The notes beneath the pieces were generated by a model that did no database searches, was not told the DNA's origin, and saw only the letters and a program-made list of their open reading frames with translations. Position numbers and translations under genes: made by a program. Shown here piece by piece: positions 5,727-28,847 of a stretch of DNA of 32,615 nucleotides (the first letter of the stretch is position 1; each line of letters starts with the position of its first letter). This DNA comes from Octopus bimaculoides. Taxonomy: Eukaryota. The stretch lies in contig NC_068994.1 in NCBI RefSeq assembly GCF_001194135.2, positions 5,135,455-5,168,069 of the forward strand, read 5' to 3'.

Positions 5727-6551
5727 NNNNNNNNNNNNNNNNNNNNNNNNNNNNNNNNNNNNNNNNNNNNNNNNNNNNNNNNNNNNNNNNNNNNNNNNNN
5801 NNNNNNNNNNNNNNNNNNNNNNNNNNNNNNNNNNNNNNNNNNNNNNNNNNNNNNNNNNNNNNNNNNNNNNNNNNNNNNNNNNNNNNNNNNNNNNNNNNNN
5901 NNNNNNNNNNNNNNNNNNNNNNNNNNNNNNNNNNNNNNNNNNNNNNNNNNNNNNNNNNNNNNNNNNNNNNNNNNNNNNNNNNNNNNNNNNNNNNNNNNNN
6001 NNNNNNNNNNNNNNNNNNNNNNNNNNNNNNNNNNNNNNNNNNNNNNNNNNNNNNNNNNNNNNNNNNNNNNNNNNNNNNNNNNNNNNNNNNNNNNNNNNNN
6101 NNNNNNNNNNNNNNNNNNNNNNNNNNNNNNNNNNNNNNNNNNNNNNNNNNNNNNNNNNNNNNNNNNNNNNNNNNNNNNNNNNNNNNNNNNNNNNNNNNNN
6201 NNNNNNNNNNNNNNNNNNNNNNNNNNNNNNNNNNNNNNNNNNNNNNNNNNNNNNNNNNNNNNNNNNNNNNNNNNNNNNNNNNNNNNNNNNNNNNNNNNNN
6301 NNNNNNNNNNNNNNNNNNNNNNNNNNNNNNNNNNNNNNNNNNNNNNNNNNNNNNNNNNNNNNNNNNNNNNNNNNNNNNNNNNNNNNNNNNNNNNNNNNNN
6401 NNNNNNNNNNNNNNNNNNNNNNNNNNNNNNNNNNNNNNNNNNNNNNNNNNNNNNNNNNNNNNNNNNNNNNNNNNNNNNNNNNNNNNNNNNNNNNNNNNNN
6501 NNNNNNNNNNNNNNNNNNNNNNNNNNNNNNNNNNNNNNNNNNNNNNNNNNN
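5727..6551. other. Assembly gap (825 N); other gaps at 4236-4414, 10073-10813, 11388-11794, 17474-17855
   Basis: N runs, four of the five bordered by microsatellite on at least one side. Confidence 1.
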
Positions 6552-7724: not shown

Positions 7725-7831
7725 AGTTTATTATTTAAGCTTATGTCAATTTCTCTGTTGTGCTGTTTTGCATTTATAATAAAATAAATATACACAAATT
7801 ATAAAAATAATTAAAAAATATACAGTATTAT

Positions 7832-8008
7832 AGGCATAGGAGTGGCTGTATGGTAAGTAGCTTGCTTACGAACCACATGGTCCCGTGTTCAGTCCCACTG
7901 TGTGGCAACTTGGGCAAGTGTCTTCTATTATAGCCTTGGGATGACCAAAGCCTTGTGAGTGGATTTGGTAGATGGAAACTGAAAGAAGCCTGTCATATAT
8001 ATGTATGC

Positions 8009-8056
<48 letters not shown>

Positions 8057-8258
8057 TTGTCAGTGTTTCTTCCCCCAACATTGCTTGACAACCGATGCTG
8101 GTGTGTTTACATCCCCGTAACTTAGCGGTTCGGCAAAAGAGACTGATAGAATAAGTACTAGGTTTACAAAGAATAAGTCCTGGGGTCGATTTGCTCAACT
8201 AAAAGGCAGTGCTCCAGCATGGCCACAGTCAAAATGACTGAAACAAGAGTAAAGAGAG
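7832..8258 (+). mobile_element. Full-length tRNA-derived SINE (family B) with internal (TA)n(TG)n microsatellite
   Basis: A-box-like tggctgtatggtaag, B-box-like gttcagtccc, internal microsatellite at ~7995-8055, tail gactgaaacaagagtaaagag. A reverse-orientation copy lies at 4192-4586. Confidence 0.85.
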
Positions 8259-8634
8259 TGCTGTTTCTTTTTCGCAGATGTTCACCCATTGTGAGGTGTT
8301 TTGGAATGTAACACCCACTAGTCGAGGAATCACTGTATGCATGTGTAAATGCACTTGCACATGTGCATGTACACACATATGCATACAAATGTGCATAAAC
8401 ATACAAATACATCTATGTACATTTGTAGACAAGTATAAAAATGAATTAAAAACAAAACAAGGAACAAAACAACAACAACAACAAAAAAAAACCATTGTAT
8501 CTTCTGCTAAACAGACTTAAATTTATTCTTGCAGAACTTCAAACATCTTCACTGGCAACCGACCAATCTGCCATCATCCTAAATATTTCCATCTCAACTG
8601 ACCAAGTCTACTACCAACCCACTAAATAACAGAC

Positions 8635-9141
8635 ATGGCTGACCAAATTCCAAGACCCAAAATCAGTGATGGTTATTTGGGAATGCAAGCGAAATTCAAT
8701 GAAATTGGTTTGTCAACTTTATCCCATGAAGACCCTCTTCTGGAATTGAATGGAAATGCCATAGAAATTATCATTGGATACAACCAACCTACCCGATTCA
8801 CGACCAAACTATTGTTGTGTAATTCCGGCGGTCAGGACAATCCAAACTTTGTTATGGTGAATAACCTCCAGGGCCGTATGTGTTATACGATCACTGTGCC
8901 ACAGATAGGCTACTACAAGTTTCAAATCTATGCCTTGCCAACCTGTGAGGCTGGTCCGAACATGGTGAATGTTTTTAATTATGTGCTCTTCTTCAAGGAA
9001 ATCACTGATGAGTTCAGACCTTTCCCTAAACAGTATCCACCATGGAAAAATGGCTGCTACATGTGGGAACCACGTGGCATACCACATGGCTGTAGGGCAC
9101 CTGGTGTACCATTTAAGGTACATTTACCAAATGCTCAACAG
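8635..9141 (+). CDS. Short hillarin/KY C-terminal-repeat paralog, first recognisable coding exon (169 codons)
   Basis: ORF 8635..9165 up to the donor CAG|GTAAGA at 9141/9142. Shares GYLG.Q.KF.E.GL.T.SH, G..K.Q.YALP, PFPKQY..WK.GCYMW.P and FKV..P.A with the C-terminus of the minus-strand protein. ATG context gacATGG; an AG at 8631-8632 could alternatively be a phase-1 acceptor. Confidence 0.88.
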
Positions 9142-9965
9142 GTAAGATGTCATTGTCATTATTGATATGTTTTTCTAGCTTATTAGACTTAATTTTTGAA
9201 GCCTTTCCACCAAAAACTGGTGCTATTGGCTACTGTCAAAGCACCTTTAGGTAGGACCCTCTGAAAGAATTTTTGAAAGTCAGAAGAAGACTGTTTTCAG
9301 AGCCCTGGGGAGTGTGCTGGAAGGTTCTTTTCAAAGTTCAAGGCAACTGAGTTCTCTCTCTCTCTCTCTCTCTGAAGGGTATGCAGCAGCTACATCCTGA
9401 CACTCCACCCTCCCTAGCTCTCTCTGGGCCCTTGATTGGTGCACTGACTGAACCCACCTCTTCTTAGAGGCCTTTTATATAGACCCATGTCTTCGTGGAA
9501 AACATGAGTATGGAAAAAACTGAGTGACTCGTTTTCATCCTTATAACAGACAGTGAAGGGTTGGTTAGTTGTTGTTGCTGTTACTGGTGGTGTTGTTCAA
9601 CCACAAATCAGTTCCAGATTAACAAAATTATGACGAAAGACATTTCAACCATGACCATCTCATCTTTTTGTTAACGACTCAGTGAGAGGAGGCAAGGCTG
9701 CATCCATGAGTGTCTTCAGAGTCCCCAAGACTGGTTCTCCACAAACCAGTGACTTTGTCCATAAACTCCCAACAGAGTGGACCCTACTAAAAGCATCCCA
9801 GGACCAGCTGGTTGTGACAAACTGAATAGTGTATTTAGCCTAGACTACTTTAGCCTTTCCTGTTCCTTTAACATGTTAAGGTTTAATTTGTGGAAAATTT
9901 GGCTACTATTTCTAGTACGATTAGCAACCAAGTAGAGGAACCTCCACACCAATAACTTGTGTTGT

Positions 9966-10040
9966 GATGGTGGTGGTGGTGGTGGTGGTAGTGGTGGTAA
10001 AGGTAGTAGTAGTAGTAGTGGTAGTAGTGGTGGTGGTGGA
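9966..10040. repeat. (GGT)n/(AGT)n trinucleotide microsatellite
   Basis: Direct reading; intronic in the plus-strand gene. Confidence 0.9.
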
Positions 10041-10813
10041 TGTGTTAACCCCAGCAGCAGTGTGTTTGCAGGNNNNNNNNNNNNNNNNNNNNNNNNNNNN
10101 NNNNNNNNNNNNNNNNNNNNNNNNNNNNNNNNNNNNNNNNNNNNNNNNNNNNNNNNNNNNNNNNNNNNNNNNNNNNNNNNNNNNNNNNNNNNNNNNNNNN
10201 NNNNNNNNNNNNNNNNNNNNNNNNNNNNNNNNNNNNNNNNNNNNNNNNNNNNNNNNNNNNNNNNNNNNNNNNNNNNNNNNNNNNNNNNNNNNNNNNNNNN
10301 NNNNNNNNNNNNNNNNNNNNNNNNNNNNNNNNNNNNNNNNNNNNNNNNNNNNNNNNNNNNNNNNNNNNNNNNNNNNNNNNNNNNNNNNNNNNNNNNNNNN
10401 NNNNNNNNNNNNNNNNNNNNNNNNNNNNNNNNNNNNNNNNNNNNNNNNNNNNNNNNNNNNNNNNNNNNNNNNNNNNNNNNNNNNNNNNNNNNNNNNNNNN
10501 NNNNNNNNNNNNNNNNNNNNNNNNNNNNNNNNNNNNNNNNNNNNNNNNNNNNNNNNNNNNNNNNNNNNNNNNNNNNNNNNNNNNNNNNNNNNNNNNNNNN
10601 NNNNNNNNNNNNNNNNNNNNNNNNNNNNNNNNNNNNNNNNNNNNNNNNNNNNNNNNNNNNNNNNNNNNNNNNNNNNNNNNNNNNNNNNNNNNNNNNNNNN
10701 NNNNNNNNNNNNNNNNNNNNNNNNNNNNNNNNNNNNNNNNNNNNNNNNNNNNNNNNNNNNNNNNNNNNNNNNNNNNNNNNNNNNNNNNNNNNNNNNNNNN
10801 NNNNNNNNNNNNN

Positions 10814-10863
<50 letters not shown>

Positions 10864-11277
10864 GGGGAGGGACAAGGAAAGAGTGAAACATAGAGTGAAA
10901 GAAGGAAAGAGAAAGAGAGTAGGAGGAGGGTGAGTTGTGGAGGAGAGTTAGTGGCAAGTTACTGTTTAGTAAGTCCAGGACTTTGAGAAGTTAGAAAAGT
11001 ATGCAGTGTCAGTATTTGGAGGTATTTGTCTAGTAATTACTGCTGTAACTGAGGTGTCTGACTGCAGAGCAGCAGGCAGACGACATGAAACAGGTATGAG
11101 GGGACGTGGGTGTGGGTGTAGATATCGATATAGATATATAATATACATAGAAGTAGGTATATGTCTCTCTTTCAAAATACCCATCCATCTATCTATCTAA
11201 CCGTCTGTCTCTCTCTATCTGTCTATCTACACACTCCCACATACATCTATGCATATATATATATATCTATCTATCTA

Positions 11278-11320
<43 letters not shown>

Positions 11321-12199
11321 AATAAATATAGAAATATATGAATATATATATAAATAGATACACACATCTATCTATCTATCTATATATNNNNNNNNNNNNN
11401 NNNNNNNNNNNNNNNNNNNNNNNNNNNNNNNNNNNNNNNNNNNNNNNNNNNNNNNNNNNNNNNNNNNNNNNNNNNNNNNNNNNNNNNNNNNNNNNNNNNN
11501 NNNNNNNNNNNNNNNNNNNNNNNNNNNNNNNNNNNNNNNNNNNNNNNNNNNNNNNNNNNNNNNNNNNNNNNNNNNNNNNNNNNNNNNNNNNNNNNNNNNN
11601 NNNNNNNNNNNNNNNNNNNNNNNNNNNNNNNNNNNNNNNNNNNNNNNNNNNNNNNNNNNNNNNNNNNNNNNNNNNNNNNNNNNNNNNNNNNNNNNNNNNN
11701 NNNNNNNNNNNNNNNNNNNNNNNNNNNNNNNNNNNNNNNNNNNNNNNNNNNNNNNNNNNNNNNNNNNNNNNNNNNNNNNNNNNNNNNNNNNNNNTATATA
11801 TATATATATATGTGTGTGTGTGTGGGTATATATATATATATATATATATACCCACACACAGAGTGTTTCTATATATGTGTAGGTTGTATGCCTGTAAAAT
11901 AAGCCATGTATATAATTTATCTGCTACAGAGAAGCTGTCCAACACATGCGCCAGCGTGGAAATATGGAAAAGCAAATGTAAACTGATATAACGTGTGTCT
12001 GTTTGTAAAGGTACCTGAAGAAAATCTCTGAGCCCTATTCTCCTACCAAAATTGCAATTCTCGAGGGATGGAGTCCCTGTATAAGGTTACATACATGTTC
12101 ATGCATCCACTCGCCCCAAATCCCACCCCCACAGACATTGCTCAGCCATATTATCATATTTCCTGTCCCATTATACACTTTGTTGAAGATATATTTGTG

Positions 12200-12315
12200 C
12201 TGGTATATAATACATATATGAATATATATATATGAATGTATATATATAGATATATATATATATGTGTATATATATATGTATACACATATATATGAATACA
12301 TATATACATATGTAT

Positions 12316-12369
<54 letters not shown>

Positions 12370-12520
12370 GCACACACAATTATATGTACGTATATACATA
12401 TATATTGTGTATGTGTATATATATATATATGTGGGTGTGTGTGTATATGTTTTTTGTGTGTGCATGTGTATTTGAATGTGTGTGAGTGTGTGCACATGCA
12501 TGTATACACATATACACGTA
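12200..12520. repeat. TA/CA/TG microsatellite complex
   Basis: Direct reading. Confidence 0.9.
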
Positions 12521-13146
12521 TATAGATCTTGGTTAGTATTTCTGTTCAAACAACCCAACAAACTTCTCATTATATTAGTATAAGAGTGGCTGAATATTCC
12601 ACAGACACATGTACTTTAATGTATATATTTCTGAGGCATAATTAGCCCATGTGTGACAATGCTGCACTGGTGCAATACTGAAAACATCTGAAAGGCTTCA
12701 ACGCAGTTTCTATCTATGAAATTTCACTTATATGGCTTGGGTCACCCAAGGGTTTAGCAAAGCACATTTCTTAACCAACCTGACACACAGACAGACACAT
12801 GCACAGATACACAGACACACAGATACACACACACACATGCAATAAAGTGTGTATTCAGTGTAATCTGGTTGTTAATCTGAAGTGGAATTTCAAGAATCAA
12901 GTTAAGTGGACATGTCCACCTTGTTGTAATGCAATGAAGAGTCAATAAAGAGCGAAAATAAGCTAAAAAAAAAACATAATGAGAATGGATTTTAATTTAA
13001 TACCTGAAGAACATTTGAAAGAAAAGAAAAGAGAGACAGGAGGAAAACTGTGAAAGGGACGAATGAAGGAAATAAAGTAGGAAAGGCAAACGAAAAAAAG
13101 TTTTAAACAACTGAAAAAACCACATGTTGCCTAAGTCAGCAATTTA

Positions 13147-13376
13147 TTGGGTTGGTGCAATAATTATTGCACCCTTTTTTCAACAAATTTTATTCAACAA
13201 AAACATCTTTAAATGAGTATTCTGGGGTATATTCACCATCTACTTCAATTACTGCTTCTCATTTGCTTGGCAGACGGTCAGACCGTCATTTAAAGATGTT
13301 TTTGTTAAATACTGTTATTGTTTTTGTTGAATAAAATATGTTGAAAAAAAGCTGTAATAATTATGCACCAACCCAA
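13147..13376 (-). mobile_element. 230-bp mariner-derived MITE with ~70-90-bp inverted arms
   Basis: TA|TTGGGTTGGTGCAATAATTATTGC... and ...TAATAATTATGCACCAACCCAA|TA, similar to the Hsmar1/MADE1 TIR. The arms extend to aaacatctttaaatga / tcatttaaagatgttt. The core translates on the minus strand as DRLPSK*EAVIEVDGEY (mariner C-terminus). Confidence 0.88.
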
Positions 13377-14882
13377 TATTTAATGACTAAAGTACAAAAC
13401 TCCTCTGGGGTGAGTTAGAGTTATTTCCTTTTGAATGTCTCAGATTTCCCAAATATCTCATCTGGTGTCTGAATAGGGATCTTGGTTGAGCCCTTTTGAG
13501 TATTTTACTTTTCTATCTAATGCATAAATCACACCTTTTTGTTCCGCTCATTCTGAGTAATATTTTTTGATAATTCTCCATTTAATGGTGTAGATTTTTT
13601 TCTTCTTTTAATTACTATTAATGTTGAAACCTAACTCAACAAGGCTTGCAAACAGTTCACAGGAGTGTCAGAAAACAAATTTAAACAAAGATTCTAGAAT
13701 CATATGACCTTCTTTAAAAATGTCAACACAAAAAAAAGATGAAAGCTACAAAATTAACTTTTAATGATGCATTGTGTTCTTGAGCAATCCTTGTTGATCA
13801 GAGAGATTCCATTCAATTTTCAAACTACGCTGGGGTGTCACATTATCTCATGTTATTGTCTTTATTATAGATGAAACTGCTTATCTTATTCACACTATTG
13901 TTGCAATTGCTGTTACTCATAAGGGAGTTGGTGAATTAGTAATGGCAGCAGCTGTACTGGTTTTGGTGTTGATGATGGATAGTGGTGGGGGCTGGTGAAG
14001 ACTGATTTATACACATCTATCCATCTACTCACCCATCCATCCATTCATTGATCCAACAATCCGTTCACACACACACACCACTTAGATGTGTACATGTGTG
14101 TATAGGATGAGATTTACACAAGATGCAATTCCTGACAGGATGTTGATCTGTTAAACTATGTTATGGGTGTGACTCCCTTTTTGCCATCGACTAACTTCCT
14201 TGGTTTACTTATTCCTACATTCTTGGCGATGACATGTTTTAATTCCTGTCTTTCTCGGTTATTTATGACAGAACAGGAAGAGGATATCTTACGTGAGAAG
14301 TGTCAGCTGTTTTTAACGGATAAACTCACACACACACACTTATGGGCTCAGCATGGGCAAATGGTTGAGAAGTTTGTTTCATATTAATGAAGTCACTGGT
14401 TCAATTCCACCACATAGCACCTTGGTCGAGAGTAATTTCCTATAGTACAGAGTCAGCTCAAACATTGTAACTAAAAATGGAATAGAAGTCAGTTGGGTGG
14501 ATTGTACTTGTAACTGAAAAATTCTCGATTATCATAGATTGTGTCATGGTGAATCTGCTTGTCATTACGCTAAGGGTACTCGTGTGTGTAGAATGCTTGC
14601 TTACACACTAATTACATGAACAAGTCAGTTGATCAAACAAATGAATATTCATAATTTACTCTCTCTCTCTCTCCCTCACACACACGCACACAATGAGAGT
14701 CTGTGTTTAGAAAGGTTAAAGTAGAAAATTGTTTCTTTGATATGTGCGGTGTGTTACTTGTTTGATGTGGAACTAGTTTGTCTTTGTCTGATCTGACCTG
14801 ATGTACGCTATGAAGTAACTACAGATGATGGATGCCTTGTGATGTTGAAACAACATCATTGAATCTGTCTTTATAATTACAG

Positions 14883-15056
14883 GTGATGGTGACTGCTGGT
14901 GGAGAGTGGACAGAACTACAAAAAGTAGAAGATTGTGTTTTCCAAGGACTTGTGGATCTCAGTCGGCAAGAAATGGCAGGAGGTGGTAAAGTACACCTGA
15001 ATGTGAAGGGCAAAGGTCAAACCCAGTACACCACGTATTTGGAGTATGATGTCTAA
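14883..15056 (+). CDS. Short hillarin/KY C-terminal-repeat paralog, last coding exon (VMVTAGGEWTELQKVEDCVFQGLVDL...TQYTTYLEYDV*)
   Basis: Acceptor ataattacag|GTG, phase 0, matching the 9141 donor; TAA at 15054-15056. Aligns with the minus-gene end VAVVADQDWTTLEKK..WEGTVEL...ATLLEYSI*. Not in the ORF track. Confidence 0.88.
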   Translation: MMVTAGGEWTELQKVEDCVFQGLVDLSRQEMAGGGKVHLNVKGKGQTQYTTYLEYDV

Positions 15057-15279
15057 AGCCATACGGATGATCCCTCTTCCCACTGACCTTTTCAATAATT
15101 TATACTTTAATTAATTCCTTTTTTTAATTTTTGCTTCCCCCCCCCCCACATATTATGTTCTTTTTTTTTTCACTAAAAACTCATGTTTTATGCACTAAAT
15201 TTACATTCTGAACTTAAAGACTTTGCTTTGTCCTAAGTTGTTATCATTGTTGCTGTTAGGATTATTATTATTAAACAGG

Positions 15280-15910
15280 GCAGTGGACAAGAAGAACTGG
15301 TAGAGTGGTGGAGAAAACAGTTTGCAGTATTTAGTTACATCACTGTATGTTCTGAGTTTCAAATCCTGCCAAAGGTGGTTTTACTTCAGATCCCTTTGGG
15401 GCTTGATAAAATATGAACAAGTGAAGTAATGCAATCTATTTGATTGACTGAACACATCCACAAGAACTTATGGCCTTGTGTCCGTTTATCTGAGAACTCA
15501 GTTATTACAATGGTCAGTGGATTGACAGAATTAGTGAAAAGGCAGATGGAAATCTATTTTAGCATTCGGTTATATCTCATAACATTCTGAGTTCAATTCC
15601 TGCTGTGACACATTTTGTCCTTCATTTTTCTGGGGCTTGATAAAAAAAAAGAACCAGTCAAGTACTGGGAGAGACCATTCCCATTCTAAATTTGTAACCT
15701 GATAAAATCATAGCAGTGCCAGAAAAAAAGTCCTCACAGTTTTACTTCCAGCACTGAGTTCAAATCACACCAAGGTCACTCAGCCTTTCATTTCTTCAGG
15801 GTTAACAAAATAAATTACCAGTCAAGTACTGGGATCGAGGGTATTGGCTTGCCTCCCCCTCCGCTCAAAATTGCCAACCATGTGCCTAAATTAGAAACAC
15901 TTATTATTTA
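15280..15910 (+). mobile_element. Three head-to-tail degenerate SINE family A copies
   Basis: The tgagtt(t)caaat, ggggcttgataaaa and accagtcaagtactggg motifs recur in three blocks (~15280, ~15510, ~15710). Confidence 0.65.
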
Positions 15911-16393
15911 TATTATCAAATCATAACCAGTTTTCATTATTTATTTAAAATGTGCTTCAAAAATGCTACTGAAGTGGCTTTAAATGACCTTCACAGGAAC
16001 ACATGCAAATTGATGACCCTTGTGGGGACACGTAATTTATTACCTTGGAATGCTACATAATTCACCTCTAAAATTTTGTGTCTTGTTTGAGTGTCAAGGC
16101 TTGCTAAATTGTATCACACTGTCTCACACATATCTATGTCAACGAGATATTCAATGTTCAGTATAGTGTTTTGACAATCTGTTTGTTATTGATTGACAGA
16201 CAACATAAAGCTTAAGGGTTCTCACCTGAAATTCATTGTGAATAAACAATTGAAATATTTCGACTATTTTTTGGCTTGTCATTATTATATTTTGCACACA
16301 CCTATATATGTATGTAACAAAAGAAAGTAGCACACGACACATTTGGTAAGAAAGATATATATCATGGCGCTGAGTCAAACTGTTATTAAATAT

Positions 16394-16634
16394 GTGGAGG
16401 CGGAGGGATTAGTGGTTAGGGTTAGGGTGTTGGACTCATGATTGTAAGATTTCGATTCATGGATCGAGTGATGTGTTCTTGAGCAAAACACTTCATTTCA
16501 CGTTGCTCCACTCAGCTGGCAAAAATGAGTAATCCTACGAAGGATCAGCGTCCTATCCGGATGGGGAATATATACGCCACGGAAACCGGGAAACTGGCCC
16601 CTTATGAGCCTGGCATGGCTTGAGAAGGGAACAT
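16394..16634 (+). mobile_element. tRNA-derived SINE (family C)
   Basis: agtggttaggg head and ttgagcaaaacacttcatttcacgttgctcc core. The same core occurs at ~812-985 (+) and as reverse complement at ~5340-5462 and ~18540-18675. Confidence 0.8.
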
Positions 16635-18199
16635 AAAATGTAAATGTATGTTATATGTATATCTATATGTTATTAATAACACCTAGAAGAAGGTGCTTCT
16701 TTTCCACTCACCAAAGCGAATAGAACTTTGGCCAGGAGGAATTGATGTCATCAGACAATATCCAACGATCGTCCGGTGTTTCAATCATTCCTCCTGGCTT
16801 TCAGCATAACAGAACTCATGAGAAAAGCTTTCAAGTCCCCGTTGACGTTGGTAAATAAATACAAAAACTGTAATGATATAAGTAGCAAGAAGCATGAAGA
16901 TTTCCTATCAAGACAACGTTTTCTATAAAATACATCGAAAAGTGCAGGAACGAAATTTGCTTAGTGGGTGCTAATACCAGGTCCAAATTATTTTACAAAC
17001 ACGGTCGACTTTTTTCAACCTTAATATCAAACCAAACACAGGTATAATACTAATTATCATTATTAATTATATTTTTACATCAAACGAATCAAATAAATCC
17101 AGAAGTAGAAAATGTTCACATCAGTCAAAAAATGCTCCTACGTTCTTTTGTTTTGGTGATGAAGTTTTTCAGGCGGATGTTCAAGACATTTCCATTATCC
17201 CCCACTCAAAAAAATTGTTAGGGGTTGCGCTTGCATGCCTTGTTCTTGAGCCAATGAATAAATCCTCCTGGAAAAGTTTCCCCACAAAAAAAAAATAAAT
17301 AATAAAAAAGGGAAAAGAAAAACCAAAAAATGTTACGTTTTGTTTACAAAACAGGGAGAGTTGCTTCCCTTGTTTTATTGACGGGAGAAATTGTTACTCA
17401 GAAGAAATATTTATTTCTTTATTGCCCACAGTGGGGGATAAACAAGGACGGACAAAGGGATTAAGTCGATCACNNNNNNNNNNNNNNNNNNNNNNNNNNN
17501 NNNNNNNNNNNNNNNNNNNNNNNNNNNNNNNNNNNNNNNNNNNNNNNNNNNNNNNNNNNNNNNNNNNNNNNNNNNNNNNNNNNNNNNNNNNNNNNNNNNN
17601 NNNNNNNNNNNNNNNNNNNNNNNNNNNNNNNNNNNNNNNNNNNNNNNNNNNNNNNNNNNNNNNNNNNNNNNNNNNNNNNNNNNNNNNNNNNNNNNNNNNN
17701 NNNNNNNNNNNNNNNNNNNNNNNNNNNNNNNNNNNNNNNNNNNNNNNNNNNNNNNNNNNNNNNNNNNNNNNNNNNNNNNNNNNNNNNNNNNNNNNNNNNN
17801 NNNNNNNNNNNNNNNNNNNNNNNNNNNNNNNNNNNNNNNNNNNNNNNNNNNNNNNCATTTGAAAGGTGATTATGATGGGAGAATTACTGGAATCGAACAG
17901 GTATTACATGGAGTAATTCTTAATAGAGAAGAAAGATCGTGCTGTTTGAGGTAACTTACCTTTTTATGGTTTTGTGTAGAAGCAGGGGCTGTGTTTGTGA
18001 TTCTTCGTGATAGGGGAGAATGGCATGGTTGGTGACAGTGTTGCAAAACAAAACAAAATTAAAAAAATAGGAATGGAGAAAGGGAAAGAACTCCAACGAG
18101 TTGACGTGGAAAGGAAAGAATGAGTAATAGTAGTATGGGGGCCCTGGGATGGACGTAGAGAGAGAGAGAGTGAGTGAGTGAGAGAAAGAGAGAGAGAGA

Positions 18200-23200: not shown

Positions 23201-24932
23201 TTAAATGGAATATTCCAGAAGGGTCGCAAAACTACTTGCATCACCACCCAGATTTGCATTAAGTGTTACTCGGGTATTTGTACCCCAGTATTTGCCCAGT
23301 TCGACTGTACCTTCCCAGATATTGTTCTTTTTCTCTAAAGTTGTCCAATCCTGGTCCGCAACAACAGCAACAGCATTAGCCGAAGGTATGGAAACCTTGA
23401 AGTTGACATTTGCCATGGCCTGTTCAGCATAAGGGCCAAGCACCAGAGGATCCCACATGTAGCAACCTTCTTTCCACTGTGCGTATTGCTTGGGGAAAGG
23501 ATAGGGTTGTTTTACAATAGCAGGGACATGTACCAAGTAGTTGTAAATACCTGGCAGTTGTTGGCTTGTATCCCGACATGGCAAAGCATAGAGCTGAAGC
23601 TTAAAGAAACCAGTTTTGGACAAAAGTACCAAAAAGCTAACAGTAGCACCTTCGGACTGGGTAAAGACACACTCAGCGTATTCCTTATTCTCCTCCACAG
23701 AGATCAAATTAGCTGTAACTCTCATTGGTTCAGCAGTAGCTAATTTAATTTCAACAAAGTTGCCTTCTAACTTAATTAGTTTATTTGGATGAGATATTGT
23801 ACGAAGGCCAAATTCCTCAAATTTCTGTTGGGGACCGAGGTAACCGGGGGGGAGCTTGGGTAGTTGAAGAGCTTTGACGTCTTCATTGCAGACAATTAGA
23901 TATTGTGCAATATGATAGAGGGTCATACCTTCTAAAGCAGGATCATTAGCATAGATCTCGAGACCATATTCACCTCGTCCAGGTAAAGAGATTTTAAAGT
24001 AAGCTGTGCGCCCAACTATTTGGTCAATGATGTAACCCTCGAGATCATCATCGCTGTGGTTGTTCGACTTTAACTTCGCCATAAACTGTCTATTCTGTTC
24101 TGGCATGCGAATTTGTAGTTCAGCCTTTCCTTCTCGTGAAACTACGCAGGCTGTCTGCTGGAAAGTTGACAGGCCGTATTTCTGGAAAGCTGAGCCAGTA
24201 CCCCATGTGAGATAACTGCAAGGTGGGAAAGGTGTAGGTTCTGGCGACGACACGGATTCTTGAATGATTTTGTATTCGCACACCTGGGAATAAACGTTAT
24301 CTTTGTTCTCTGGAGTGTCTTCCTTAGCATATATGTACAACACATATGAACCAGTAACAGGCAGGCGAAGGCGGAAAGATGCAATGCCATTGCTGCTCTC
24401 TTGCATGCCATAACGATTAATCTTGATGCCTTTGTACTCTTCTCTACCATCTTCAAACTGGATGCTGAAGTTGAAGGCCAGGGGTCGTCGTTGGTGAGGA
24501 TAGGTGAGGCGAATGTTCAGTTCACCACGTGCATTAATAACAGCTGTGGTGTTACTGATAAACTCCAGTTCATACTTGAAGAACTGAGGCTTCATGTGTG
24601 GTTGGTTCTCAAATTCTTCCAAAGTAACAGGTTGTTCTAGCAGCTGCCACTTAGGGTCGTCAGGGAAATGAGTAAACTTGAGTTGATGAGGATTAGTCAA
24701 AAAGAAATACTCGTCCAAGGAATATAGGAAATCCTCTTCATCAGTCTGAGTACTCGATTGTTTGCCGATTATGCGCCGCGCTGCCCAGTGGCAGTCTATG
24801 AGGCACCAGTGGCCGTAGATGTAGACTGCATTCCACGAGTGCTGATTGCTGCCTCGAGTAAACTTCTGGCCAGGACGATAGTCGGCTCCCTTGGCAAACC
24901 CACTGATAATTTGGCTGTGGATACCAGCATAC
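23201..24932 (-). CDS. Hillarin/KY-family transglutaminase-like protein, last coding exon (His/Asp half of TGase-like domain, three ~115-aa repeats, terminal module, stop)
   Basis: Lies in the 594-aa ORF 23201..24985, whose first 17 residues are intronic CT-repeat. Acceptor ctccaacag|G (AG at 24934-24933), phase 2, TAA at 23203-23201. Motifs YAGIHSQIISGFAKG, QHSWNAVYIYGHWCLID and DEYFFLTNPHQLKFTHFPDDPKWQLL match the KY/hillarin/Cyk3 transglutaminase-like family. Confidence 0.93.
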
Positions 24933-24944
24933 CTGTTGGAGTAG

Positions 24945-25110
24945 ATAGAGAGAGAGAGAGACAGAGATGATAGAGAGAAATACATGGTGGAAAGACAGAC
25001 TGGGAAAGAGAGAGAGAGGTTATGGAGAAAAAGAGACAGAGAGAGAGGGTAAGAGATAATGGCGAGACAGAAAGAGATGATGGAGAAGAGACAGAGAAAG
25101 AGATGATATA
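24945..25110. repeat. GA-rich purine tract (CT-rich on the coding strand) abutting the acceptor of the 1.7-kb exon
   Basis: Direct reading. Confidence 0.9.
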
Positions 25111-25308: not shown

Positions 25309-25449
25309 CTGCAGAGGATATCAAAGACCATAGCATATGTGGTCCTGCCTGTCTTCAGGCCCATAAGGATCTCTTCAGGACTGTTTGGTTCAACATTTTG
25401 AAAGTTGAATGCACTCAGGTCTTTGGAGGCCAACCAACGGAACACGATT
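25309..25449 (-). CDS. Hillarin/KY-like gene, internal exon (IVFRWLASKDLSAFNFQNVEPNSPEEILMGLKTGRTTYAMVFDILC)
   Basis: Acceptor ttctcaacag|A, donor AG|GTAACT. 141 nt, phase 2 to phase 2, joins both neighbours in frame, giving ...EKVR-IVFRW... and ...ILCR-YAGIH..., a typical TGase-like N-terminal half. Not in the ORF track. Confidence 0.9.
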
Positions 25450-25884
25450 CTGTTGAGAAACAACACTGTTAGTAGAGAAGCAATGTGGATTTACTGATGT
25501 AGGAGTGTGGTGTCAATGTCGAAATTGGAGGAGTAATTAAGTTGCACCATTCAGTGGCCAGCAAGGGTATAACAGAATGTCTAGGCCCAACCATCTCTCT
25601 CTATATGAGCTGACTAGTGAACTGCCATACAGTTAATTGACTTGTTAGAAATAACAGCCAAATATCACCACCTAAGTATCTTGGAAAGGGATGGACACAT
25701 TGGATAATGTACTCCTCAATACACAATGCCTGAGAGAAGTACAGAGCGGTCACACCTGAGATACCTTTGGTTATCTGTTTGTTGAATCAAGATTGATTTG
25801 AGGCTAAATAAGAACAACCATTGACTTGTCCAAACAGCTCTACATCAGATGTGTACATTGGGGACATATATGGGAAAGCAGAAC

Positions 25885-25922
<38 letters not shown>

Positions 25923-26100
25923 AGTTGGTGTGAGAGAGAGAGGGATGTGTATGCCAGGAGTATTACAGCTGCTTGTTGACTGGAAAGGCAGTTTGACTGT
26001 GTAGGTGGGGTGTATGTTAGTCGACAGACTCTCTAGTCTAGACCAACGTATAAAGATTTGAAGTTGCAATATAGGGAGGCAAGTTTAGGGGCCGACTTAC

Positions 26101-26189
26101 CTGACTTTTTCTAACTCATTGGTAATGTTCTTGCTGAATATCATATCCCAGACAAGGTCTTTGAAGCTGTCGTGGGAGCTCTTGGACAC
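26101..26189 (-). CDS. Hillarin/KY-like gene, internal exon (VSKSSHDSFKDLVWDMIFSKNITNELEKV)
   Basis: Acceptor ttccaaaacag|G, donor CAG|GTAAGT. 89 nt, phase 0 to phase 2, in frame with flanking exons. The 'L..ELEKVR.+FRW' pattern precedes the TGase-like core in this family. Confidence 0.88.
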
Positions 26190-27227
26190 CTGTTTTGGAA
26201 GCAAAGTAACATGTTAGCATGGCATTAAATGGGTCAATCCTGCCAGAAGATGGTAGTGGAGTATGAGTGGAACTGTTTGAATGAAACTCTATAGGAAGTG
26301 TGTGGGAGGTGGGAGAGGGGATGCAGAATAATTGGAAATAGAAAACAAGAGAGAGAGAGAGAGAGAGAGAACTGAATAAATAGGAATGGGTAAGTAAAGA
26401 TAGAGAGAGAGAGAGAGAGACAGAGCGATCACTAAGGAGAAAGTTAAAGAGAGAGAAATAAAGAAAAAATCAAAGGAAGAAATAGATAAAAAGAAGAGAG
26501 TCTGACACAGAGAAAAGAGTAGAAACCTGCCTTGGAAGTGGGTGGCATTGTAACAGATTTTTCAGTGAAATTGTTACATTATGGTCAATACTGATCATAA
26601 CAATAACAATAACTGTTATATACAACAAACAGTAGAAACAATTAAAACTGTGGCAGGCAGTAATATAGGAGGAGACTTTGGCTTCAAAGTTTACATCTAT
26701 CTTTTGCCTTCTGTCTGAGTGAAGTAATTTTGAGAGACAACCTACCAACGTTGGTCAATGTGAGAAAAAGGGTTTTTAAGAGTTAACCATCACAACATAA
26801 ATTTTCAACAATTGGTTAGCATTCAATTTTTAATTGTGTAAAAATTAACTCGACAGTCCATGTCAGTAACGAGAGGAGTCCATACAAGAGAGAGTTTGTA
26901 GAGTTCAGTTGGTGAGAAGAGAGAAATATGTAACAAATCTAAAATGCTTACAGATGACATCACTTCTTTCTCATTCTCAAAGACTAAAACATCAGATCCT
27001 TCTGTCCCTGCAGCAGGAACTAAACTAATTAAACTCTCTTAAGTTTACTCTTTATGTTGCGTTTGCATTTAATTACATATTGATAATAAGTTGTTTGACA
27101 ACCATCACAAACTCATTGGGATTGGTTTAAGTTTCCTTTATAATGCTGGCGAGCGTCTCCACAATCATCATCTGTCCTTACCAACATAAGAAAGTTGTTG
27201 TCGTCGTCATCGTTGTCATCATCATCA

Positions 27228-27432
27228 TTTAAGGTCTGCCTTCCATGCTGGCATGGGTTGGATGGTTTGACAGGAGCTAGCCAGGCAGTAGACTGCACCA
27301 GATTTCTGTGGTTCTTTTGACATGGTTTTTACTGCTGGATGCCCTTCCTAACACCAACCAACCTGCAGAGTGGACTGAATGTTTTTTTACGAGGCACCAG
27401 CACAGGTGAGGTTAGTTTTGGCATGGTTTTTA
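27228..27432 (+). mobile_element. Interspersed repeat with RTE-type 3' motif (ggatgcccttcctaacaccaacc)
   Basis: The GGATGCCCTTCCT..C.CCAAC motif is typical of RTE-related LINE/SINE ends. Preceded by (TCA/TCG)n. Confidence 0.5.
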
Positions 27433-28157
27433 TCCAAACAATATTACATTGAAGGCTTGAAATAAAATACTGCTGCTGTTGTTGACCCCTATGTCAAATC
27501 TATGACCAATGTGTCCTTCCTTTTCTAAGATGATATGGTGTGATTTGATGGAATTTGGCTGTTATTTCCAGCAAGCTGATATTTTCCCCATCACATTTGA
27601 TCCAGTTATAATAAGGCTCTTTGTCTCTTTGTTCACAGTCATTGTGATCTGAAGAAGTTCAAAAACATCTCAGTTGGTCAAGTTTATATTTTTCTACATT
27701 AACTCAGTCTCATTAGGTCGATGTCTGCCATTATTTCTCTTATCTCCAAGTCATCTGGAATGTGTTTTTGTTAAGAAGTCTTCTGTTATCCCCACAGTCT
27801 GTCAATTTCACCAGCTGATATTAGCTACATCATTCTAGATTGTTATCTAATTTAACCAAGGTCTCTGAACATGAAGGAATAACAGAGGGAATGAAGCAGA
27901 GCAGTGGGTGGCAGTGATGTGAATGATCCACAATGGAGGAGTCTGGGTAACCATTAACTCCAGGACCCCACGATCCACAGCTCAGAACGATGTATGCACA
28001 AACCTGACCAATGTTCTGCATCAATATCCTAGTGATATAAAGAAATGAACATACAATAAACCAATAATATACATATATATAGCAGTGAACATAATAACTA
28101 GAGACTGAAGGGAGTCAAGCTGGGGTTTGGCTGATTACAGGGTCACCTGCAGAGAGA

Positions 28158-28430
28158 AGAGAGTTAGAAGGGTTTTTTCCTTGATGGAGCATAGTTAACT
28201 CAGATAAAAGGGGACTAGAAGAATTTTATTCAGACAGGGCAGAGTTGACTCGGATAAAAACGAATTAGATGGGTCTTACCTGTCTTACCTAGATGAAGCA
28301 TGGTTGCTGCAAATGGAATAGACTAGGTGTGACCCATTTGGATGGTAAGCCATCTCAGAGAAGGAACTAGATGGCAACTACTTGGATGACACGAGAGGAG
28401 GAGTTAGAAAGGACTTACCTGGATGGCATG
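28158..28430. repeat. Degenerate ~40-55-bp tandem units (gagttagaaggg.cttacctggatgg.gcatgg-like) overlapping the 28419 splice donor
   Basis: About six imperfect units. A further copy is at ~30484-30520. Confidence 0.55.
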
Positions 28431-28847
28431 GTCATCAACAGATTTCAGCACTTTTTGATCCATTACCTCCAGAGAAGGCTTATGTTCTTGGTTGGATATT
28501 GGTACTGGAGGTGGTGCACCTTTTGACTCATCTACAGCTTCCAACTTGAAAGTGGTAGGAGGCAAAGGTGCAACCTGCCCCTTTGATCGCTTTTCGACAA
28601 TAATTGGAGTCTCTGAAGCAGGGATGTTAAAGAAGTTAGCCCTTTGAGTGGGCTTGCTATAGAACTGGCCAGCCCCAGGTCGATAGGAGAGATGACCCTG
28701 TCCTTTGGAATGCGCCATTTGGCCAAAGAGTGGTTGTTGAGCAGTGTTTTGTAATGTTCCGTAGAGAAACTGTTGCTGGAGCAGCTCAGGAGGAGGTGGT
28801 GGGAAGTTTTGGTCATTTATGTCCATGTTTTGCATACCATCGGTCAA
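28419..28847 (-). CDS. Hillarin/KY-like gene, Pro/Gln-rich internal exon (LTDGMQNMD...FPPPPPE...VDDHAIQ)
   Basis: Within ORF 28404..28877. Acceptor ctctgtttctgcag|TTG, donor CAG|GTAAGT. 429 nt, phase 0/0. Ends in VDDHAIQ, which continues in frame into VSKSSH. Confidence 0.85.

Follow-up and report, generated by a model that had tools for sequence, protein, structure and literature searches.

A short octopus gene encoding only the tail module of hillarin, and its relatives in other molluscs

We analysed a 32,615-nt stretch of the Octopus bimaculoides genome (assembly GCF_001194135.2, contig NC_068994.1, positions 5,135,455 to 5,168,069 of the forward strand; hereafter the window), in which a short plus-strand coding region faces a minus-strand hillarin gene tail-to-tail. 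An earlier note, made from the letters alone, had proposed that splicing 8635-9141 to 14883-15056 yields a protein collinear with only the C-terminal end of hillarin. We are almost certain that this is a real, independent and conserved tail-only gene of ancient origin: its spliced mRNA was found in public RNA data, its reading frame is under strong purifying selection, and close relatives were recovered from chitons, gastropods, bivalves and cephalopods.

Results

Structure of the transcript

The RNA evidence consisted of contigs from four public runs of four studies (X1, X2, X14 and X6). In all of them the contigs matched the window exactly over 8533-9143 and then, inside the same contig, from 14879 onwards, the overlapping letters at the junction (ACAG/GT) being common to both sides. 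The 2,053-nt contig of X2, for instance, carried window 8533-9143 at contig 68-678 and window 14879-15400 at contig 673-1193. The splice sites (donor GTAAGA, acceptor TTACAG) were canonical and kept the frame, giving an open reading frame (ORF) of 226 amino acids (aa), so that the intact ORF read from the letters is now backed by a junction in four RNA runs. There are five runs of N in the window, two of which (10073-10813 and 11388-11794) lie between the two exons; since the mRNA joins 9141 to 14883 whatever these gaps contain, both are intronic. Unspliced precursor was seen as a contig running from the intron into exon 2 at a depth of 26, against contig depths reaching thousands for the spliced form.

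The contigs of all four runs began matching at 8533 with an identical loose 5′ end (...GCAAGTACAGACGCAGTTTTTCAGTGGTGA), and the extra letters spliced onto the 8533 acceptor, up to 94 nt in all four runs, ended in ...CAGTTTTTCAGTGGTGA. The letters of this upstream exon were not found in the readable window, even with two mismatches allowed; the exon, and the transcription start with it, must lie either within one of the assembly gaps or beyond the left edge of the window. Because a TAA stands in frame at 8623-8625, 12 nt before the ATG, and no ATG occurs in 8533-8634, the upstream exon is non-coding and belongs to the 5′ untranslated region (UTR). The same TAA-ATG arrangement was found in a genomic contig of an Octopus congener (L006). 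A transcript start just upstream of 8635 had been anticipated; the coding exon does begin there, at 8533, and a further exon is spliced on upstream. Upstream exons that add coding sequence had been named in the earlier note as a threat to its reading; this one is non-coding and leaves the protein tail-only.

At the other end, the X2 and X14 contigs stopped at 16260, the latter in a run of A, and X1 showed a weaker extension to ~17261. The mRNA is polyadenylated and made up of three exons, of which 8533-9141 and 14883-16260 are in the window and the first, a non-coding 5′ exon, lies outside its readable part. It does not overlap the hillarin transcript, the 3′ UTR of which reaches ~21020. Within the 3′ UTR of the short gene, at 15137 and 15161, the RNA contigs and the assembly were one base different in length, in a C run and a T run; these differences are homopolymer variation or assembly error and leave the protein unaffected.

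The encoded protein

The encoded protein was 100% identical to the RefSeq entry 'uncharacterized protein LOC106868331' (226 aa, Octopus bimaculoides). The only domain returned by a Pfam scan was PF23265 (Ig-like_KY), which covered aa 16-131 and scored 63.2 bits (E 3.6e-17; curated gathering threshold 27), one such stretch as against three in the hillarin ORF. The transglutaminase-like core (PF01841, the 'W180' region) was not detected by Pfam in the short protein, and the end of PF01841 was present in the neighbour. An intact, independent gene lacking the transglutaminase-like domain is also supported by the RNA, by the in-frame stop at 8623 and by orthologues with the same N-terminus.

AlphaFold2, run with the family alignment, gave a model with a predicted local distance difference test (pLDDT) score of 91.7 and a predicted template-modelling (pTM) score of 0.86, in which two all-beta domains have their strands within residues 26-120 and 142-225. 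The protein is accordingly modelled as two predicted Ig-like beta-sandwiches, namely the last Ig-like_KY domain and the terminal sandwich that ends every hillarin-like protein examined, and its former description as a 'one-repeat' protein has to be given up. Foldseek against the PDB returned generic tandem-Ig structures only (titin Z1Z2, Sap S-layer domains 4-5, Fabs and pilus chaperones; E ~1e-6, template-modelling scores of 0.2-0.33, identity 8-14%), and a PDB sequence search with the family profile gave no match; the structure therefore offers no functional lead. The two consecutive sandwiches predicted for the short protein resemble the tandem Ig modules of titin Z1Z2 in generic fold only. 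Tandem Ig modules are typically protein-binding units. By eye, the N-terminus was without an obvious hydrophobic stretch, and the protein is probably cytosolic, like hillarin.

A molluscan family of tail-only proteins

A word-indexed search recovered full-length relatives of 221-235 aa with 41-51% identity to the octopus protein. Those with names were 222-227 aa long and came from the gastropods Nucella and Lottia and the bivalves Pinctada, Pecten and Mizuhopecten, with Biomphalaria represented by a 245-aa isoform; other cephalopods were 73-96% identical. An alignment of 15 sequences (A1) had 42 invariant columns and a mean column identity of 63%, with a common start M-A-x-x-x-P-K-x-x-D/E-G-Y-L-G and a common end L-E-Y-T-I/V. 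The octopus protein agrees with the family in its length (221-235 aa), in having its Met a few residues ahead of P-K-x-x-(D/E)-G-Y-L-G and in closing on L-E-Y-x-x. The signature loop of the family, Q-I-Y-A-L-P-x-x-E-A-G-P-N-M, is present in the octopus protein as QIYALPTCEAGPNM; E105, A106 and G107 were invariant in A1 and P108 was at least 90% conserved.

When a profile was searched against 1.84 billion representatives, 898 matches were obtained at E<1e-3, among them many further proteins of 222-235 aa. The further short members that carried names were all from molluscs: the chiton Liolophura (three genes), Gigantopelta, Candidula, Lymnaea, Tegillarca and a second gene of Nucella. Some short members, in Gigantopelta, are automatically named 'kyphoscoliosis peptidase-like'. 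Four candidates (P0142, P0149, P0172 and P0181) clustered tightly with long proteins; they were taken as fragments of these and left out of the family.

In neighbour-joining trees built on ~220 columns of the module, the core family was monophyletic (bootstrap 96/100) and apart from the hillarin tails. With named taxa only, the core was again recovered at 96%, at 98% together with the chiton short2 protein, and the cephalopod, bivalve and gastropod subclades at 92-96%. Branching inside the core family followed the mollusc classes, and two more groups of short mollusc proteins appeared with poor support. The 98% clade that includes the chiton places the duplication before the chiton-conchiferan split. 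The node joining the short proteins to the hillarin tails had a bootstrap of <30% (named taxa), and mollusc-specific support was seen only in the first tree; with values below 30% at the attachment to mollusc, annelid and flatworm hillarin tails, an origin inside Mollusca is therefore not claimed.

The ratio of non-synonymous to synonymous rates (omega, Nei-Gojobori) was 0.043 for exon 1 between O. bimaculoides and the congener (dN 0.015, dS 0.35), and 0.156 for two sequences from run assemblies that are closely related to each other and match the octopus protein at 73-74% identity; between octopus and either of those two the silent sites were saturated. These values (0.04-0.16) point to strong purifying selection on the tail-only family and agree with the proposal that the frame has been maintained with dN/dS well below 1.

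RefSeq and UniProt hold these proteins under the names 'uncharacterized protein LOC106868331' and 'KY-like immunoglobulin-like domain-containing protein', the octopus entry being identical to ours and the other mollusc entries being orthologues that are 221-235 aa long and begin and finish alike; all are automatic annotations without described function or publication. In the library searched, neither the locus name nor 'KY-like immunoglobulin-like' led to a paper, and the hillarin papers found there do not treat short forms. The earlier note knew of no described family member with this minimal architecture, which stands as regards papers and fails as regards databases. The family is catalogued and undescribed, an ancient domain-subset variant of a known family.

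Relation to hillarin and to KY-like proteins

The minus-strand neighbour was searched by tblastn with the hillarins of Patella vulgata (P0023) and oyster (P0028). The Patella protein gave four minus-strand matches, the last of which (24931-23204) had 62% identity, and by this homology the neighbour is a hillarin orthologue, a single exon of which encodes the last 580 residues. BLASTP of the 226-aa protein against the 594-aa minus-strand ORF (23201-24985) gave 76/222 identities (34%, E 8e-41) in an alignment collinear with aa 376-594 (nt ~23860-23204) and ungapped at the splice junction. All motifs on which the collinearity had first been noticed (GYLG.Q.KF.E.GL.T.SH, PFPKQY..WK.GCYMW.P, WT.L.K and LEY) are in this alignment, and the stop codons, put at ~8.1 kb apart, are separated by 8,145 nt in tail-to-tail orientation. 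The short-family profile covered the last 220-240 residues in 72 of the 74 full-module hillarin-like proteins, and every hillarin-like protein tested ended in a module spanning the whole profile.

Thirty-one positions were conserved in both the short family and the mollusc hillarin tails; Gly, Pro, Trp and core-type residues make up most of these. A further eight were conserved within each group but with a different residue in each (E105>D, G107>S, P108>Q, F96>L, I98>L, K58>N, V210>A and K211>N); they concentrate in the loop QIYALP..EAGPNM, which reads LQLYA.P..D.SQQLPG in hillarin, and in NVK, which is NAN in hillarin.

Compared with hillarin (leech Hillarin, Drosophila D-Hillarin and, here, the orthologue in the window), the short protein is homologous to the C-terminal module over the full length of that module, sharing the Ig-like_KY domain, the PFPKQY..W linker and the terminal sandwich that ends in LEY. 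It differs in lacking the transglutaminase-like (W180) core, the first two Ig-like_KY domains and the proline-rich N-terminal region, in its size (226 aa against at least 800), in its conserved loop (EAGPNM against D.SQQLPG) and in its expression, which is uncoupled from that of hillarin. Kyphoscoliosis peptidase (KY) and LTD-1 of C. elegans are likewise transglutaminase-like proteins with KY-type Ig-like domains, and PF23265 is common to them and the short protein. They are more distant, at 23% identity between the short protein and the tail of a chiton KY-like protein, and the short protein is without their transglutaminase-like or LIM domain. KY acts at the muscle Z-disc. For D-Hillarin, concentration at the cleavage furrow and a genetic interaction with a septin are reported (PMC3718969, citing Ji et al. 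2005), and nothing comparable is known for the short protein.

A side observation concerns the hillarin gene itself. At 23662, in its last exon on the minus strand (codon 442 of the 594-aa ORF), the RNA of three runs had C where the genome has T, that is, A to G on the coding strand, which changes ACC (Thr) to GCC (Ala). The depth share of the variant was 100% in X1 and X6 and 89% in X14, and DNA contigs of four different samples carried the reference T. This is probably a high-level adenosine-to-inosine recoding site in the third Ig-like_KY domain of hillarin; no such difference between RNA and genome was seen in the RNA contigs over the coding sequence of the short gene.

Gene architecture and synteny

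The coding region of the short gene was a single exon in Pecten, Pinctada, Lottia, Liolophura, Gigantopelta and Biomphalaria (in the last for aa 8-226). An intron at codon 169/170 was common to the octopus gene, the Octopus congener (L006) and a 77%-identical cephalopod (P0005); being present in the cephalopods only and in none of the other six molluscs, it is read as a cephalopod gain. The hillarin region homologous to the short gene was one uninterrupted exon in Octopus and Pinctada and carried introns in Biomphalaria.

In Biomphalaria, a hillarin orthologue with 68% identity to the octopus ORF lies downstream of the short gene on the opposite strand, with 6.2 kb between the stops. Hillarin was not found within 10 kb of the short gene in Pecten, Pinctada, Lottia, Liolophura or Gigantopelta; for the Nucella protein P0007 there was no contig on record. 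The neighbours there were an ASC channel gene and vinculin in Pecten, a TIR gene in Pinctada (with hillarin 43 Mb away on the same chromosome), a Cu-oxidase gene in Lottia, a cluster of short genes with one frameshifted copy in Liolophura, and a tandem 223-aa gene together with a 451-aa two-module fusion in Gigantopelta. The convergent arrangement, which had been expected to be conserved, is thus matched in Biomphalaria, and the 10 kb around the short gene showed no sign of it in the other five.

Several details of these loci were recorded. In Biomphalaria glabrata (L004 10001-12500), an upstream exon gives RefSeq isoform X1 of the short gene 20 additional N-terminal residues; the main exon contains the conserved Met-Ala start, and there is an intron upstream of the main coding exon, as in octopus. 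The tandem short-family pair of Gigantopelta aegis (L010 4931-5602 and 10001-11356) encodes 223 aa and a 451-aa single-exon fusion of two complete tail modules, from which it follows that the tail module duplicates and fuses locally. In Liolophura sinensis (L011 4169-4804, minus strand), an uncalled third tail-like copy spreads over three reading frames, head-to-head and ~5 kb from short2; it is likely a pseudogene or an assembly error. Short1 lies ~29 kb from this region on the same chromosome.

Expression of the two genes

The mean contig depths of the short gene and hillarin were ~3,600 and 618 in X1, 18 and ~4 in X2, 434 and ~50,000-110,000 in X14, and 20 and 1,337 in X6. The corresponding ratios of short gene to hillarin (~6, ~4, ~0.006 and ~0.015) spread about 1000-fold across the runs, which argues that the two genes are independently regulated.

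Just past the poly(A) site of the short gene, a short element at 16400-16520 had many divergent loose ends and, in each of the four RNA runs, depths of 1,500-28,000. It is a dispersed transcribed repeat; by eye it looked tRNA-like and may be akin to short interspersed elements (SINE-like), and neither ARAGORN on 16400-16520 nor Rfam on 7800-17470 gave a match. A second peak of RNA depth, up to ~13,800, was seen at 17430-17470, on the edge of the gap 17474-17855, and is probably another repeat.

Table 1. Positions in the window of the short gene and of the hillarin orthologue that faces it
Feature	Positions	Strand	Remarks
5′ UTR part of first coding exon	8533..8634	+	acceptor ttcttgcag/AACTTC at 8532/8533; in-frame TAA 8623-8625; no ATG
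Coding exon 1	8635..9141	+	507 nt, aa 1-169: N-terminal linker (PK-ISDGYLG), Ig-like_KY domain, PFPKQY linker, start of second beta-sandwich
Intron	9142..14882	+	phase 0, GT..AG, 5,741 nt as assembled; holds gaps 10073-10813 and 11388-11794 and microsatellites
Coding exon 2	14883..15056	+	174 nt, aa 170-226 and TAA stop (15054-15056); remainder of C-terminal beta-sandwich, ends LEYDV
3′ UTR	15057..16260	+	~1.2 kb; AATAAA 16241-16246; poly(A) site ~16260
Hillarin orthologue, last large exon	23201..24935	-	end of transglutaminase-like core, three Ig-like_KY, C-terminal sandwich; RNA contigs end at 24935 with loose end
Module homologous to short protein	23204-23860	-	within hillarin last exon
Upstream hillarin exons	25311..28787	-	tblastn matches 28787-28413, 26192-26100, 25451-25311

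Discussion

The data above are best accounted for by a single origin of the family, no later than the ancestor that chitons and conchiferans last shared. The copied stretch would be the 3′-terminal part of hillarin's large final exon, most likely duplicated as DNA, locally and in inverted orientation, and the resulting convergent pairing would survive in Octopus and Biomphalaria. The coding region would at first have been intronless, the cephalopods then gaining the intron at codon 169/170. That a cephalopod and a gastropod both have the tail-to-tail pairing is most readily understood as inheritance from an ancestral local inverted duplication. The protein is probably a small protein-binding adaptor of the cell cortex or the cytoskeleton with the same fold as the hillarin tail. 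For the statement as a whole, that is, a real gene of ancient origin encoding an adaptor with its own specificity, we consider the balance moderately favourable; for the adaptor mechanism taken by itself, the chances appear about even.

The earlier note had inferred an old inverted partial duplication. Its derivation of the gene from the C-terminal module of hillarin is upheld, and the local inversion is made plausible by the Biomphalaria pairing; an octopus-specific or recent event is contradicted by the bivalve, gastropod, cephalopod and chiton members of the family and their 98% bootstrap.

A number of points weigh against this reconstruction. The local inverted duplication is based on two lineages, Octopus and Biomphalaria, and the pairing was not found within 10 kb in five other species. 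A 5′-truncated retrocopy would give an intronless tail-only gene too. The trees are neighbour-joining trees on only ~220 columns, and the attachment bootstraps below 30% may also be compatible with an origin before molluscs, or with several origins of the other short subfamilies. The depth of a contig reflects expression only crudely, and the tissue of each run is hidden. The adaptor function, finally, is deduced from predicted fold and ancestry only.

With regard to function, the short protein could instead bind the ligand of hillarin's C-terminal module and so titrate or modulate hillarin as a competitor or dominant-negative form. Its fold and boundaries do match the terminal module of hillarin, and the two groups have 31 conserved positions in common, yet most of these are Gly, Pro, Trp and core-type residues and the best-conserved loop differs systematically between the short family and the hillarin tails. 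The genes are still neighbours in Octopus and Biomphalaria and both are expressed in the same four samples; against this, the ratio of their depths varies about 1000-fold across those samples and the short gene is retained in five species in which hillarin was not found within 10 kb of it. Moreover, the several short subfamilies and the tandem arrays in molluscs suggest diversification and not a fixed antagonist. A conserved surface loop and an expression pattern of its own make a separate partner or role likelier than titration of hillarin's ligand; we therefore rank competition with hillarin second to the adaptor with its own specificity and regard it as unlikely.

As for origin, the family could have begun as a 5′-truncated retrocopy of hillarin mRNA, the present adjacency being secondary. 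Chiton, gastropod and bivalve short genes lack introns in their coding region, which runs collinear with the parental 3′ end as far as the stop, and in Biomphalaria the homologous region of hillarin has introns and the short gene has none. In Octopus and Pinctada, however, the homologous region of hillarin is itself a single exon, and the lack of introns therefore cannot tell a DNA duplication from a retrocopy. A poly(A) remnant or target-site duplications are not to be expected for a retrocopy of this age. It is also improbable that a retrocopy would land a few kb from its parent in tail-to-tail orientation, yet this pairing is present in a cephalopod and a gastropod. Retroposition thus appears decidedly unlikely, and the local inverted duplication is preferred.

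It would be very surprising, further, if the two coding exons were only the 3′ end of a longer gene with upstream coding exons in the gap 5727-6551 or beyond the left edge of the window. There is indeed an upstream exon, with up to 94 nt spliced onto 8533 that are not in the readable window, and the AG at 8631-8632 could in principle be an alternative acceptor. This reading was rejected, being largely refuted by the in-frame TAA in the transcribed exon, which has no ATG over 8533-8635 and in which both TAA and ATG recur in the congener, and by the 15 aligned orthologues and RefSeq models, which start within a few residues of the same Met; tblastn, in addition, found no other hillarin-like coding sequence on the plus strand of the window. 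An assembly artefact or a decaying pseudogene, with a frame that crosses the gapped intron by chance in a non-functional copy, as the two assembly gaps between the exons and the 34% identity to the neighbour might suggest, has practically no chance of being right and was rejected on the RNA junction and selection data, that is, spliced mRNA at high depth in four runs and omega of 0.04-0.16 with conserved orthologues in the other mollusc classes sampled, besides a confident structure model.

A bolder reading, which we put forward as a speculative possibility, is that the short genes represent an old radiation in every sampled mollusc class. These would be abundant cytosolic tandem-Ig proteins of at least three subfamilies, with tandem arrays, a two-module fusion in Gigantopelta and binding specificities of their own, and the core family would have kept the ancestral convergent linkage with hillarin in cephalopods and gastropods for >500 million years through a common 3′ regulatory sequence or chromatin.

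For annotation, the analysis confirms the RefSeq model across two assembly gaps and shows the gene to be complete, not part of a longer one; in other respects it is an ancient domain-subset paralogue of an ordinary kind. The hillarin/KY proteins are poorly understood, cytoskeleton-associated proteins with connections to fly cytokinesis and mammalian muscle disease. If the radiation is true, it would be an undescribed branch of this transglutaminase-like/KY cytoskeletal system. In molluscs the Ig-like tail of hillarin has been dissected out by nature, in that the tail is separately encoded, strongly conserved and well expressed, and the short protein could be expressed, crystallised and used as bait for the binding partners of the tail.

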